Sequence record: NC_061447.1
DNA: 64,000 nt
Direction: 5' to 3' (one strand)
Shown: piece by piece, positions 10,710 through 14,531 of the stretch
How the letters are laid out: every line of letters begins with the position of its first letter
How positions within the stretch are numbered: position 1 is the stretch's first letter
Made by a program: the position numbers and the translations under genes
Notes under the pieces: model-generated
What the model was told of the DNA's origin: nothing
What the model saw: the letters and a program-made list of their open reading frames with translations, nothing else
Database searches by the model: none

Positions 10710-11954
10710 ATGGCACGTGGATTTGGTGACATTCAAGACAACAGCAAGCGCGATAGCTTGCGTGAGTCAGAGATCTTTGAAATCTTCCCTCTTTCGAAGA
10801 AAGCAAACGGCAACTGGGTATCAATTCGTCTGCTTGACCTTGACCTGCTTCCAATCAAGAAGCACTGGATCAAGATCATGGGCGGCAAAGATAAAGACAA
10901 AGAGATCAAAATCCCGCGCATGTGCGTTAGCTTCGACCCGGACAATCAGAACAAACCTCTGAACGGTATGAAGTGCCCGTACTGTGGTATCGCTCACGGT
11001 AACGACGAATCTGGTGCGCCGGCGCAGTACGACTATAAGTGGTACGCACAGGCAATCATTCGTGACGAGCAGGCTGCTGCACCGCGTAAAATGCCTAAGC
11101 TCACTAAGCAAGAGCAGAAGACAGGCAAGAAAGAAATGGGCAGTGAGTCTTGGACTCCTGTTATGTGTATTCCTCTGTCTAACTCTCTGGCAGGCAAAAT
11201 CCGCGAGCTGGGTGAACGTAACATTCACACAGTCAAAGATAAGAAGTCTGGCAAGAAGTCTAAGCAGGCGTTCCAGGTTAACCATCCGAAGTATGGCTGC
11301 GATATTGAAATCAAATACAACGCCAAAAAATCTCCGGCCGAGCGTTACACCATCGAACGTGGCGATCACACTCCGCTGACCGAAGAAGAAAAGGGCTACC
11401 TGACCTGGGACTTCGACAACTGGAACGAAATCTACGACATGCTGGGTCGTCTGGACGAAGCCGCCGCTATGGCAGACTTCAAAAAGATGGACGTTATCGG
11501 TGTCAACACCAACGATGATGGTGATGATGACGAAGACGATGACGACGATGACATGGCGCTGGGCCGCAAGAAGAAAGGCGGCAAGGCAGACAAGAAAAAA
11601 CGTCGCAACGATGACGATGATGACGACGAGGATGAAGATGACGACGATGACCGTCCATCCAAGTCCAAGAAGTCAAAAGCGTCTAAGTCTCGTAAGCTGT
11701 TAGACGATGACGAAGATGACGATGACGAAGACGATGATGACGATCGTCCTTCGAAAAAGAAAAAGTCCTCGAAGGTGAAGTCTAAGAAGTCTAAGAAGTC
11801 GGACGATGATGACGACGACGAAGACGATGCACCTAAGAAGAAGAAAAAGAAATCTTCTGACAAGGTGAAATCATCCGATAAGAAGAAGAAAAAGAAATCT
11901 TCTGATGACGATGATGACGACGCGCCGAAGAAGAAAAAGAAAAAGAAAAAGTAA
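10710..11954 (+). CDS. T4 gp32-like single-stranded DNA-binding protein with long D/K block tail
   Basis: IRLL..HWI..C...CPYC N-terminal pattern; directly upstream of RecA; long alternating acidic/basic tail. Confidence 0.7.
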   Translation: MARGFGDIQDNSKRDSLRESEIFEIFPLSKKANGNWVSIRLLDLDLLPIKKHWIKIMGGKDKDKEIKIPRMCVSFDPDNQNKPLNGMKCPYCGIAHGNDESGAPAQYDYKWYAQAIIRDEQAAAPRKMPKLTKQEQKTGKKEMGSESWTPVMCIPLSNSLAGKIRELGERNIHTVKDKKSGKKSKQAFQVNHPKYGCDIEIKYNAKKSPAERYTIERGDHTPLTEEEKGYLTWDFDNWNEIYDMLGRLDEAAAMADFKKMDVIGVNTNDDGDDDEDDDDDDMALGRKKKGGKADKKKRRNDDDDDDEDEDDDDDRPSKSKKSKASKSRKLLDDDEDDDDEDDDDDRPSKKKKSSKVKSKKSKKSDDDDDDEDDAPKKKKKKSSDKVKSSDKKKKKKSSDDDDDDAPKKKKKKKK

Positions 11955-11962
11955 TCGGTAAC

Positions 11963-11989
11963 GGGGTAGCTTAGGCTGCCCCTTCTTTT
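11963..11989 (+). terminator. intrinsic terminator
   Basis: GGGGTAGC-TTAG-GCTGCCCC + TTCTTTT. Confidence 0.85.
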
Positions 11990-12011
11990 CTCAATCTGGA
12001 CTATAGCACAA

Positions 12012-14531
12012 ATGGCTAAAGCGAAACGAATCAAGGCTGAAAAAGAAGCCGAAGGTAAAACCAAAGCCAAGAAAGGTAAAGCAGTCGCAGCCGATGATGT
12101 TGGCGGCGTAGAAGTCATGGGCTTTGACCTGGCTAGTTTGATGGACGATGTTCTTGATGGCATCGAAAAGAAAACGAAAGTAAGTTCGCAGGATGCAGCG
12201 CGTCACGCACCTCGTATCTCAACAGGCTGTCTCGCACTCGACATGTTCCTGTCTGGTGGCATTGTCCCTGGTGGCTGGTACACGTTTAGCGGCGGTGAGC
12301 AGTCGTGTAAGTCAACAATGACCATGAGTATTATGGCGAGCCTGATTCGTCTGCATTACTCTGGCATTAGCGTAGTGTTTGACTACGAAGGTTCAACCGA
12401 CGCAGAGTACGTTGCTGGTCAGTTGAAAACGTTCGGCGTTCGCGTTGACCCGAAAACTATCTTCGGTGTGCGTGATGACGAAGACGGTAGCTGGATCGTT
12501 AAGCCTAAGATCCGTTACTATGCCCCAGACAACGGTGAGCGCTTCTTCGATTATATGTCGATGCTGCGTCGTCGTCTGCCAGACAAGATCGTTGAGAAAG
12601 ACGGTACCGCGTATTACATCTTTGAGAACAACAAAGAGAACGCGAAGAAGCTGGCTGGTAAGTACGACAAGAAATGGTTTAGCCGTAACAACCAGTTCAA
12701 AGTACCTGCGCCAGACGGTCACATGCAGGCTATGGTTATCGTTGACTCCTATCCTGCAATGATGCCAGATCAGGTCGATGATGACGAAGGCTCGAAAGCA
12801 ATGGCGCTGCAAGCGCGTATGTTCTCTGACGGCATCAAACGTTTCCGTGGTGGTATGCGCCGTAAGATGATGACCATCGTTGGTGTTAACCAGTTGCGTC
12901 AGAAGCCTGCTGTTATGTTCGGTAGCCCTGAGTATGAGCCAGGTGGTGATGCGTTGAAGTTCTACTGCTTCGACCGCGATACTCTGATTCGTACTGATCA
13001 CGGCGTGCTGACTGCACCTCAGATCAAAGAGCTGATCGATGCTGGCAAGGAAGTCATGGTCGAATCGTTCGACGGCTTCCAGAAGATCAATGGCGCGTGG
13101 AAAGTTGATGACGCTCCGTTCCCAATCGAACTGAACGCTGGTGGACATGCGTATGTTGGTAGCGCTGAACACCGTCAGTTCACCTTCATGTATGACACGA
13201 CTGCTGATGGTATGGCTGTGCTGCGTCCTGAGTGGAACACGCTCAACCAGCTTGCTCAATATCCAGAGCAGAAAGGCCAGTATGCAGGTCTGCGTGTACC
13301 ACCTGTGAAAGAACTGAAAGCGAACGTGCCTGATGCGTTTGATGAAGCAAGCCAGCTCGTTAGCAATCTACTTGGCAACGCTGACTTCGTAAGCGTACAA
13401 CTGCCTCTGGCTGTTGCTGGTGATACCACGTTTGCTGCGAACGTACTGACTACCAATATGATTGGTGATCAGGATGATGTTCACACGTTCTCTTTGTGGG
13501 CACGTCACCTACTGTCTATCGGTATCTATGCTTACGCCGATGAAAGCGGTCTGCATATCCCAGGTCTGAACTATCACGAACTGCAAGCGGCTGTAACTCA
13601 GGATGAACTCGGTGCATTTGCTGGTATCAGCTTCGAAGCCACCAGCCGTCAACGTCAGACTCAGATGCTGACTGTGATTGCAGACGTGTTCCCTGAACTG
13701 ACCCGCTACGTGCTGGACTATCAGTTGCAGACAGGCCAGGATAAAATCTATCTGGCGCCAGAGCAGGACTTCGCACAGGCTCTCGACCTGATTCTGCATA
13801 AGCAGATTGAAGGTTACGATGACCAGTACGACCTGCTGATGCAGCAACTGGCGTACATCGACGACTGGTATAACTTCGATAACTCTATCGTTCCTGTTCC
13901 GTTCACGCTGAAAGCTCTGGTCAATCCTGTGGAGTTCTGGGATGTGAACGTCGAAGAAACGTCTGTTGTGATCACTAACGGTTTCGTTAGTCACAACTCT
14001 GACGTGCGTGTTCGTCTGGCTTCTCGTGCTGTGCCTCAGGGCTGGCCGACAATGAAAGACGCACCGGGTATCGTTGGTGAGAAGTCTGTAACTGTTGAAG
14101 GTGGTACCGACCGCTACCGTTTCATTGCAGCCAAGACCATCAAGAACAAGATGGGCGGCATCCCTAACCAGCAGACTTGGTTACGTCTGTGGGAAGCTGA
14201 CGGCAACGGTGAAGCGCGTGGCTTCGACCCAGTGTTCGATACGTGGCATTACCTGAAAACTCTCGGCCTGATCAACGGCACTCGTAAGAGCTTCAAGATC
14301 AAGGCGCCATGCCCGCTCGCATCTGACGTTAAGATGGACTGGGATGACTTCCGTACTCTTATCAACGGCAGCAAAGAGCAAGTTGTTGGCGTGTGTAAGA
14401 AACTGAAAGTCAAACCTGCTGGCCTGCGTCTGTGGTGCTTCAAGTTCGTGCAGTCTACCAAAGGCAACGAGATGTTGAAGAACGCTATCAGTAAGTCTGC
14501 GAAGACTTCTGATGACGATGACGACGAGTAA
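12012..14531 (+). CDS. recA: RecA/UvsX-like recombinase precursor containing an intein
   Basis: GGEQSCKST Walker A variant, VIVDS Walker B, QARMFS, VNQLRQK, GGDALKFY/SDVRV RecA motifs. Confidence 0.93.
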   Translation: MAKAKRIKAEKEAEGKTKAKKGKAVAADDVGGVEVMGFDLASLMDDVLDGIEKKTKVSSQDAARHAPRISTGCLALDMFLSGGIVPGGWYTFSGGEQSCKSTMTMSIMASLIRLHYSGISVVFDYEGSTDAEYVAGQLKTFGVRVDPKTIFGVRDDEDGSWIVKPKIRYYAPDNGERFFDYMSMLRRRLPDKIVEKDGTAYYIFENNKENAKKLAGKYDKKWFSRNNQFKVPAPDGHMQAMVIVDSYPAMMPDQVDDDEGSKAMALQARMFSDGIKRFRGGMRRKMMTIVGVNQLRQKPAVMFGSPEYEPGGDALKFYCFDRDTLIRTDHGVLTAPQIKELIDAGKEVMVESFDGFQKINGAWKVDDAPFPIELNAGGHAYVGSAEHRQFTFMYDTTADGMAVLRPEWNTLNQLAQYPEQKGQYAGLRVPPVKELKANVPDAFDEASQLVSNLLGNADFVSVQLPLAVAGDTTFAANVLTTNMIGDQDDVHTFSLWARHLLSIGIYAYADESGLHIPGLNYHELQAAVTQDELGAFAGISFEATSRQRQTQMLTVIADVFPELTRYVLDYQLQTGQDKIYLAPEQDFAQALDLILHKQIEGYDDQYDLLMQQLAYIDDWYNFDNSIVPVPFTLKALVNPVEFWDVNVEETSVVITNGFVSHNSDVRVRLASRAVPQGWPTMKDAPGIVGEKSVTVEGGTDRYRFIAAKTIKNKMGGIPNQQTWLRLWEADGNGEARGFDPVFDTWHYLKTLGLINGTRKSFKIKAPCPLASDVKMDWDDFRTLINGSKEQVVGVCKKLKVKPAGLRLWCFKFVQSTKGNEMLKNAISKSAKTSDDDDDE
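12966..13997 (+). mobile_element. intein (344 aa) in RecA with degenerate LAGLIDADG-like core
   Basis: Begins CFDRDTLIRT (block A) right after LKFY; SAEHRQF (block B-like); ends WDVNVEETSVVITNGFVSHN followed by Ser+1; removal restores LKFY-SDVRVRL. Confidence 0.92.

Follow-up and report, generated by a model that had tools for sequence, protein, structure and literature searches.

The stretch of DNA analysed here, referred to as the window, comprises 64,000 nucleotides of the 263-kb genome of the Erwinia jumbo phage pEa_SNUABM_33 (MZ443779, record bases 186001-250000). The window carries a gene for a RecA/UvsX-like recombinase, the coding sequence of which is split by an in-frame insert that is almost certainly an intein. 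The gene, at 12012..14531, is a 100% match to bases 198012-200531 of MZ443779 (window base 12012 being record base 198012), where its product is named 'hypothetical protein'. The features of the gene are listed below in amino acids (aa), with the type of support in brackets.

12012..14531, plus strand: RecA/UvsX-like recombinase precursor, 839 aa plus stop (list of open reading frames, Pfam, PHROGs)
12012..12965, plus strand: N-extein, aa 1-318, ending at Tyr318, the equivalent of E. coli RecA Tyr218
12966..13997, plus strand: intein, 344 aa, class 1 by its motifs (translation, AlphaFold2 model, HINT fold, invariant residues)
12966..13298, plus strand: N-terminal part of the HINT domain, intein aa 1-111 (model secondary structure, invariant columns, omega)
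13329..13622, plus strand: LAGLIDADG-like half-domain, intein aa 122-219, alpha-beta-beta-alpha-beta-beta-alpha (models, VIA-align)
13623..13883, plus strand: four-helix bundle replacing the second LAGLIDADG half, intein aa 220-306 (both models)
13884..13997, plus strand: C-terminal HINT part, formed by intein aa 307-344 and including blocks F and G, FWDVNVEETSVVITNGFVSHN (invariant residues)
13998..14531, plus strand: C-extein, 177 aa plus stop, beginning at Ser+1 (13998-14000) with SDVRVRLASR

The N-terminal part (318 aa) of the 839-aa protein is matched by the Pfam RecA family (4e-23), and phrog_97, the family of UvsX-like recombinases, matches the whole protein (1.9e-78). Residues 12-831 of the protein align to positions 11-479 of this profile, and therefore about 340 aa of the protein are extra. 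The N-extein contains the Walker A-like motif GGEQSCKST and the L2-like loop NQLRQKPAVMFGSPEYEPGGDALKFY. The C-extein matches phrog_97 on its own (1e-18) and is continuous with intein-less orthologues across the junction.

Splicing motifs and fold of the insert

The 344-aa insert is in frame, has no stop codon in its translation and is located between Tyr318 and Ser663 of the precursor. Its first codon, TGC (Cys1, 12966-12968), stands directly 3' of TTC TAC (Phe-Tyr), and its last two codons, CAC AAC (13992-13997), encode the terminal His-Asn and are followed by TCT for Ser+1. The class-1 splicing residues are Cys1, Ser66-x-x-His69, Asp326, His343-Asn344 and the extein residue Ser+1. Block A (CFDRDTLIRT) and block B (GSAEHRQ) are found in the N-terminal part of the HINT domain, with Ser66 at 13161-13163 and His69 at 13170-13172; block B reads Ser66-A-E-H69, with a serine where threonine is usual. 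In the C-terminal part, the codon of Asp326 is at 13941-13943. The residues C1, S66, H69, D326, H343-N344 and S+1 are invariant in 14-15 homologues, as distant as 28-31% identity. The invariant columns are C1, F2, T6, I8, R9, T10, G65, S66, H69, R70 and Q71 in the N-terminal part, and D326, V327, V329, T332, T337, N338, F340, V341, S342, H343 and N344 in the C-terminal part.

In an AlphaFold2 model of the intein, for which 14 homologues were the alignment input, both ends of the intein together form a HINT domain (predicted local distance difference test, pLDDT, 88.3; predicted template modelling score, pTM, 0.87). Using VIA-align, this model was superposed on the NpuDnaB intein (4o1r; Z 16.2, 129 aa, root-mean-square deviation (rmsd) 2.0), the TliVMA intein (7qsu; Z 16.0 over 227 aa) and the splicing domain of the Mtu RecA intein (2imz; Z 14.7, 129 aa, rmsd 2.5). 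At Z of at least 8, 28 chains were retrieved, nearly all of them inteins, BIL, Vint or hedgehog HINT domains, and the top matches in Foldseek were PI-PfuI (7e-6), VMA inteins and PI-SceI. The mycobacterial RecA inteins (PI-MtuI of M. tuberculosis at site 'a' and the M. leprae type at site 'b') are alike in being class 1, in Cys1 and His-Asn, in their RecA-family host and in their nested LAGLIDADG-derived domain. Despite the superposition of 2imz on the HINT domain, they share no detectable sequence similarity with the present intein (phmmer against PDB sequences gave no intein match), and they differ in that the host here is a jumbo-phage RecA/UvsX-like protein with Ser at position +1.

The insertion site is empty in several relatives: the junction (marked by a slash) reads ALKFY/SDVRLRMASR in Dickeya phage JA29, ALKFF/SDVRIK in NCTB and ALRFY/SDCRLK in Pseudomonas phage PaBG, and it is also uninterrupted in the metagenomic relatives P0041, P0042 and P0045. 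An earlier, sequence-only reading of this DNA had described an intein in a phage RecA, consisting of a 344-aa insertion at LKFY/SDVRV with Cys1, terminal His-Asn and Ser+1, and had proposed a search for intein-less orthologues. The intein is borne out by its fold, its motifs and the empty-site alleles, the exact borders agree with the DNA, and orthologues that are continuous at the junction were found in JA29, NCTB and PaBG.

Sequence profiles are of little help for this insert. On its own it has no intein, HINT or LAGLIDADG match in Pfam (E up to 1) or PHROGs, it is not among the matches of a PF14890 search of the phage genome (E up to 0.01), and phmmer against PDB sequences gave chance matches only (E of at least 0.1), none of them an intein. 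A CUE domain, the only Pfam match on the insert (sub-threshold, E 0.014), was dismissed. The missing Pfam and PHROGs matches could speak for a non-splicing insertion domain, or for an annotation or assembly artefact. The miss by PF14890 is a failure of profile sensitivity and not a defining property of inteins, and such a non-intein origin is made extremely improbable by the HINT fold at Z 16, the invariance of every class-1 catalytic residue, the exact empty-site alleles and the recurrence of the insert in 53 phage records that were sequenced independently. We are therefore highly confident that the insert is a genuine class-1 cis-splicing intein.

In the predicted reaction, the 839-aa precursor would be translated as a single chain, Cys1 would make the N-S acyl shift, and the resulting thioester would be attacked by Ser+1. 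Cyclisation of Asn344, aided by His343, His69 and Asp326, would then leave a recombinase of ~495 aa and the free 344-aa intein. Judging from its position, the 344-aa insert should not permit a working recombinase. Because the insert-bearing exteins are nevertheless under very strong purifying selection, the precursor must presumably be spliced efficiently during infection. The gene names in the records checked ('hypothetical protein', 'UvsX-like recombinase', 'putative RecA protein' and similar) leave the intein unannotated; in these phages for the biocontrol of fire blight and soft rot, the mature recombinase would therefore be ~495 aa and not 839 aa long. In the literature consulted on these phages, no mention of a RecA intein was found, and the PaBG paper notes terminase inteins only.

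Architecture of the nested domain and selection acting on it

The two parts of the HINT domain enclose a nested domain (residues 112-306), which was also modelled separately (pLDDT 86.0). The topology of aa 122-219 is identical in the whole-intein and the domain-only models, and in VIA-align this segment is closest to the LAGLIDADG domain of WhiA (Z 7.0), followed by the TliVMA nuclease domain (Z 5.0), I-DmoI (Z 4.9) and I-CreI-type enzymes (Z of about 4.1-4.4). For the four-helix bundle that follows, only generic helical matches were obtained (Z at most 5.1). The structural matches thus span a single LAGLIDADG half, without the two-half DNA-binding saddle, and this loss of the canonical two-fold nuclease architecture supports the term 'degenerate'. 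With the ESM Atlas, recognition of the nested domain was below a useful level, and only unnamed clusters were returned.

The sequence-only reading had pointed to three remnants of LAGLIDADG blocks, of which one stands. VSNLLGNAD lies at the end of helix 122-138, where LLGNAD140 forms a remnant of the first motif; D140 is kept in this phage and its closest relatives and replaced by V, G, Q or R in other homologues. LAVAGDT and HLLSIGI were rejected as blocks, since in the model the former sits in the beta1-beta2 hairpin and the latter at the end of helix 172-183. MLTVIAD(240), which closes the first helix of the bundle (223-238) and carries D or E at position 240 in every homologue, is more likely to represent the second motif. 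These observations suggest, with the models as their basis, that the nested domain is derived from a LAGLIDADG homing endonuclease and has been remodelled to one half plus a four-helix bundle. The nuclease activity has most likely been lost.

Selection was estimated as omega, using codon models, for a set of 18 sequences, within the Alexandra-like clade and for close pairs. Over the 18 sequences, omega was 0.20 for the LAGLIDADG-like half plus the bundle, 0.12-0.14 for the HINT parts (0.13 for the N-terminal part) and 0.06-0.09 for the exteins, which are under some of the strongest constraint found in this analysis. Restricted to the Alexandra-like clade, the estimates were 0.19 for the LAGLIDADG-like half, 0.13 for the bundle, 0.09-0.13 for the HINT parts and 0.05-0.07 for the exteins. 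In close pairs, the LAGLIDADG-like half reached 0.07-0.15; for example, it differs between this phage and AD1 by 24 synonymous and 6 non-synonymous changes. In addition, the intein keeps a length of 317-354 aa down to ~30% identity. The nested domain is not drifting and is kept by purifying selection. The earlier description of a decayed endonuclease can therefore be retained in part: there is no Pfam LAGLIDADG match, one half is left and is followed by a helical bundle, and the first Asp is not conserved. Plain decay does not agree with omega values of 0.07-0.20, the maintained length and the conservation of D240. A remodelled nuclease domain under selection also bears on the question of why 'dead' homing domains persist in inteins.

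Degenerating endonuclease domains are known from the archaeal PhoVMA and TliVMA inteins (7qst, 7qsu and 7qss), which are among the best whole-chain structural matches of the present intein (Foldseek E ~2e-5 for all three). In these inteins, the nuclease domain is nested at the same position of the HINT domain, and there is no sequence similarity to the intein described here. The phage intein is different in that a helical bundle replaces the second nuclease half and in that the whole nested domain is under measurable purifying selection across the phage clade.

The match to WhiA, a LAGLIDADG-derived protein, raises the idea of recruitment, in which the nested domain or the excised intein would have taken on a new, non-homing function, such as that of a DNA- or protein-binding regulator. 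The constraint on the helical bundle (omega 0.13), which equals that on the splicing domain, and the maintenance and exchange of deeply diverged alleles of the half-domain would fit with this. A Z of 7 is also reached by commonly occurring arrangements, neither the Atlas nor the family searches yielded a match, and no partner, motif or expression evidence points in this direction, so that recruitment is regarded as quite unlikely.

Distribution and history in the phage clade

Among the records that cover at least 80% of the recombinase gene, the intein is present in 53 of the 53 phage records of the clade (Alexandra-, Yoloswag- and fHe-Yen9-02-like), always in the recombinase gene. The sporadic presence among close relatives that is a signature of homing is thus not seen for this intein. 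The intein and extein trees share four major lineages, namely Alexandra-like, Yoloswag-like, fHe-Yen9-02-like and Afa-NA1. The extein tree does not resolve the branching order of these lineages, and the intein branches are several times longer. Across the family, identity to this phage falls from 99% to 69% for the exteins and from 98% to 29% for the intein, and the insert does not differ from its flanks in GC content. The intein looks like an old resident of the clade that is mostly inherited vertically, and not like a recent invader. The proposal of the sequence-only reading that a selfish element had homed between co-infecting phages is, as a recent event, not supported, given the presence in all 53 records and an intein tree that follows the extein tree at clade level. 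The intein-less JA29 is placed in an unresolved basal polytomy, and therefore both a late gain of the intein and a loss in the JA29 lineage are possible.

Two of the intein-bearing records deserve a remark. PV550095.1 (Alcaligenes phage Afa-NA1, 78 kb) and PV359490.1 (Salmonella phage Sen-NF, 108 kb) carry a RecA with an intein of 30% identity to the present one, with the same scores in both records. They are far shorter than their jumbo-phage relatives, and the gene in Afa-NA1 starts at base 1; both may be partial or mislabelled assemblies.

Internal segments of the intein recombine between phages. Between P0033 and P0028, identity is 100% in the exteins and 98-100% in the bundle and in the C-terminal HINT part, but 56% in the LAGLIDADG-like half and 82% in the N-terminal HINT part. 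In the latter two segments, P0033 resembles P0021, of which the exteins are 85% identical. No other part of the intein varies as much as the recombining LAGLIDADG-like half, whose synonymous divergence between this phage and pEa_SNUABM_17 is 1.6, compared with 0.5-0.7 for the exteins and the neighbouring parts of the intein. The segment at 13299-13622 of the window (intein aa 112-219) thus appears as an exchangeable, deeply diverged cassette, also in P0021, P0028, P0031 and P0033, with a synonymous divergence of the half-domain that is 2-3 times that of the flanks, yet with an omega of 0.07-0.19. It is possible that this mosaicism results from co-conversion during homing of a second intein, which occupies a neighbouring site in the L2 loop in some relatives. 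A selected, exchangeable module is also conceivable, being either the recognition part of a non-canonical nuclease used in phage competition or a recruited DNA- or protein-binding function, and we regard it as a minority option. If it were true, a domesticated intein domain would be available in a cultured phage system.

The explanation that we favour, with moderate confidence, is that of a splicing class-1 intein and old resident, in which the remodelled nuclease domain no longer serves homing and is kept for folding and splicing. The intein would have been gained after the split from NCTB/PaBG-like phages and then inherited mostly vertically, and its composition is by now like that of the gene. 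The nested domain would be retained as the intein requires it for folding and splicing. Several points weigh against this explanation. Splicing itself is a predicted event, read from the sequence. The half-domain resembles known structures only weakly (Z 4-7), in a model that was built on an alignment of 14 sequences. D140 and D240 are both present in this phage, so that the domain may be a non-canonical nuclease, and mycobacterial RecA inteins are reported to cut DNA despite atypical motifs. Purifying selection together with cassette-like exchange exceeds what is predicted for a structural filler. Lastly, L013 is incongruent between the extein and intein trees, and therefore some horizontal exchange has occurred.

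Alternatively, the nested domain could be an active, non-canonical homing or competition nuclease, with the half-domain as its DNA-recognition module and the intein still mobile. Purifying selection on the nested domain (omega 0.07-0.20), the residues D140 and D240, which in this phage and those closest to it lie at the ends of the two candidate LAGLIDADG helices, and the swapping of the module between phages with identical exteins are in line with an active nuclease. In addition, the intein-less JA29 and the intein-bearing AD1 share the host Dickeya solani MK10. On the other hand, the second beta-saddle half is missing, many members of the family retain the domain without D140, Pfam finds no LAGLIDADG match, and there is no presence/absence polymorphism within the clade, while the neighbouring L2-site intein is, by contrast, sporadic and has canonical motifs. 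An active nuclease is therefore considered unlikely, though worth keeping in mind.

The insertion point and the other inteins

The position of the favoured old-resident intein within RecA can be defined from a phmmer search against PDB sequences, in which residues 241-318 of the precursor were aligned without gaps to E. coli RecA 140-218 (1n03/2reb numbering); therefore, the intein directly follows the equivalent of Tyr218. It is here that the L2 loop segment NQ.R.K..VMFG.PE...GG.ALKFY ends, and the end of the L2 loop also belongs to the strand of the RecA subunit interface. A second point lies within the L2 loop, at G204/N205 in E. coli numbering, and is used by a widespread LAGLIDADG intein family of bacteria and phages. 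This point, GVMFG/(C...HN)/SPETTTGG, is presumably the M. leprae-type RecA-b site, and the M. tuberculosis RecA site 'a' is located further downstream, after KVVKNK. The present intein is found 14 residues downstream of the L2 point, after LKFY, and thus not at RecA-b. The LKFY/S site is distinct from the L2-loop point and from the M. tuberculosis point.

For RadA/RecA, five insertion points, a-e, have been catalogued (Topilina et al. 2015, PMC4513877): sites a, b and d lie at the interface between monomers, whereas c and e lie at the ATP site. The post-Tyr218 point was not found in the literature consulted, which gives the locations of a-e without residue numbers, and the LKFY/S site may be identical with site 'd'. 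The sequence-only reading had proposed a comparison of the site just after LKFY with the catalogued RecA sites. The site differs from the L2-loop point, and it may coincide with site 'd'.

The end of the L2 DNA-binding loop is a place where contacts between extein and intein could sense the state of DNA or of the filament. The sequence-only reading had already suggested a post-translational switch, and splicing, together with the recombinase activity that depends on it, might be conditional, gated by single-stranded DNA, redox state, metal ions or infection stage, with the resulting benefit explaining the fixation of the intein. The long-term fixation alongside a selected nested domain would agree with this, and conditional splicing of the P. 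horikoshii RadA intein serves as a precedent (PMC4513877). Cys1 is the sole cysteine of the intein, and position -7 of the N-extein is variable, with Gly here and Cys in others, and a conserved disulfide trap is therefore not apparent. The difficulty of exactly deleting an intein from a strongly conserved gene explains the fixation equally well. The switch is a hypothetical reading, which we judge improbable.

Bacterial genome contigs were scanned for the pattern GGxALKFYC, which gave at least 120 matches. Among the 120 matches listed (L021-L140), 118 are RecAs of bacteria in which a Cys naturally follows Tyr218 (ALKFYCSVR and similar). As Cys naturally replaces Ala after Tyr218 in these proteins, the bare string LKFYC is no evidence of an intein. 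One further listed match is a chance, non-RecA sequence, and the only intein among the 120 listed is the phage gene itself, on contig L060. A scan with at least 120 matches does not establish that cellular RecAs are free of a post-Tyr218 intein. The long open reading frame of L038 was considered as a possible downstream intein and rejected as merely an open GC-rich frame. L060 (JAVWLC010000071.1, 9.2 kb, assigned to a 'Raoultibacter sp.' metagenome-assembled genome, MAG) carries the phage RecA with an intein allele like that of L011, and is probably a jumbo-phage contig that was mis-binned into a bacterial MAG.

The further intein sites and inteins of the window, of related phages and contigs and of the rest of the genome are as follows.

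12921..12926, plus strand, point between 12923/12924: vacant L2-loop intein site, Gly304/Ser305 (alignment, junction strings, DNA)
L006:1909-2958, L014:1913-2962 and L007:1071-2117: L2-site inteins in sister phages and relatives
L143:2250-3656: 469-aa intein at LKFY/S
L161, match at 1907-1938: 289-aa intein in a 230-kb viral contig
G000:C1:30832-32985 (L142:265-2418): C5 cytosine methylase-like gene with intein signal (DNA_methylase 1.9e-37, Hint_2, Intein_splicing)
around G000:C1:3161-3697 (L141:823-3537): 944-aa open reading frame with intein signal and no other Pfam family

The L2-site intein is 350 aa long (VMFG/C...HN/SPEYEP) and is inserted 14 codons upstream of LKFY/S. It is carried by pEa_SNUABM_17, Yersinia phage fHe-Yen9-02 and metagenomic contigs, and belongs to a family of 140 proteins that includes phage and bacterial RecAs; in the latter, the junctions read GVMFG/C...VHN/SPETTTGGNALKFY/ASVR. 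It resembles the post-Tyr218 intein in being a class-1 intein in the same gene, with Cys1...HN/Ser+1. Unlike the latter, it is detected by Pfam (Intein_splicing 2.2e-13), contains AVGDSS and FYMDDG as two canonical LAGLIDADG-type motifs and is sporadic, being present in only one of P0033 and P0028. Since it is canonical, sporadic and shared with bacterial RecAs, the L2-site intein behaves as an actively homing element.

In viral contigs, the LKFY/S point is occupied by the intein family described here and by one unrelated 289-aa intein (L161), which has the same insertion point and Ser+1 and is shorter. The 469-aa intein of L143 (P0044), in an NCTB-like metagenomic RecA, also has the same insertion point and Ser+1. 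Its last 21 residues are 57% identical to the present intein family (hhalign probability 91%); as hhalign aligned these residues only, a common origin of the two inteins is not shown. Unlike the intein of this phage, it has an intact nuclease domain according to Pfam (LAGLIDADG_3 2.9e-16), and it is present in P0044 and missing from P0042, of which the exteins are near-identical. The RecA insertion point after Tyr218, which was not found catalogued, is thus used by three different inteins in jumbo-phage RecAs. With two inteins 14 codons apart, the clade shows all four allele states (neither, either one or both). As these occur in cultured phages with tractable hosts, they are convenient for studies of homing, co-conversion, fixation and the possible conditional splicing of a recombinase.

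The recombinase gene is preceded by a gene for a single-strand DNA-binding protein (phrog_15004), and the same order is found in relatives. In the window, this upstream gene is at 10710-11954 on the plus strand (phrog_15004 match 4.8e-147), and the tail of its product, ~150 aa, has long Asp/Glu runs alternating with Lys runs. An antisense open reading frame of equal length, at 11432-12163, is an artefact of the tail repeat. No family was matched by the antisense open reading frames of 161, 288 and 66 aa inside the recombinase region, which were taken to be chance frames. Outside the window, the same phage genome gives at least two further intein signals, those of the methylase-like gene and of the 944-aa open reading frame listed above.

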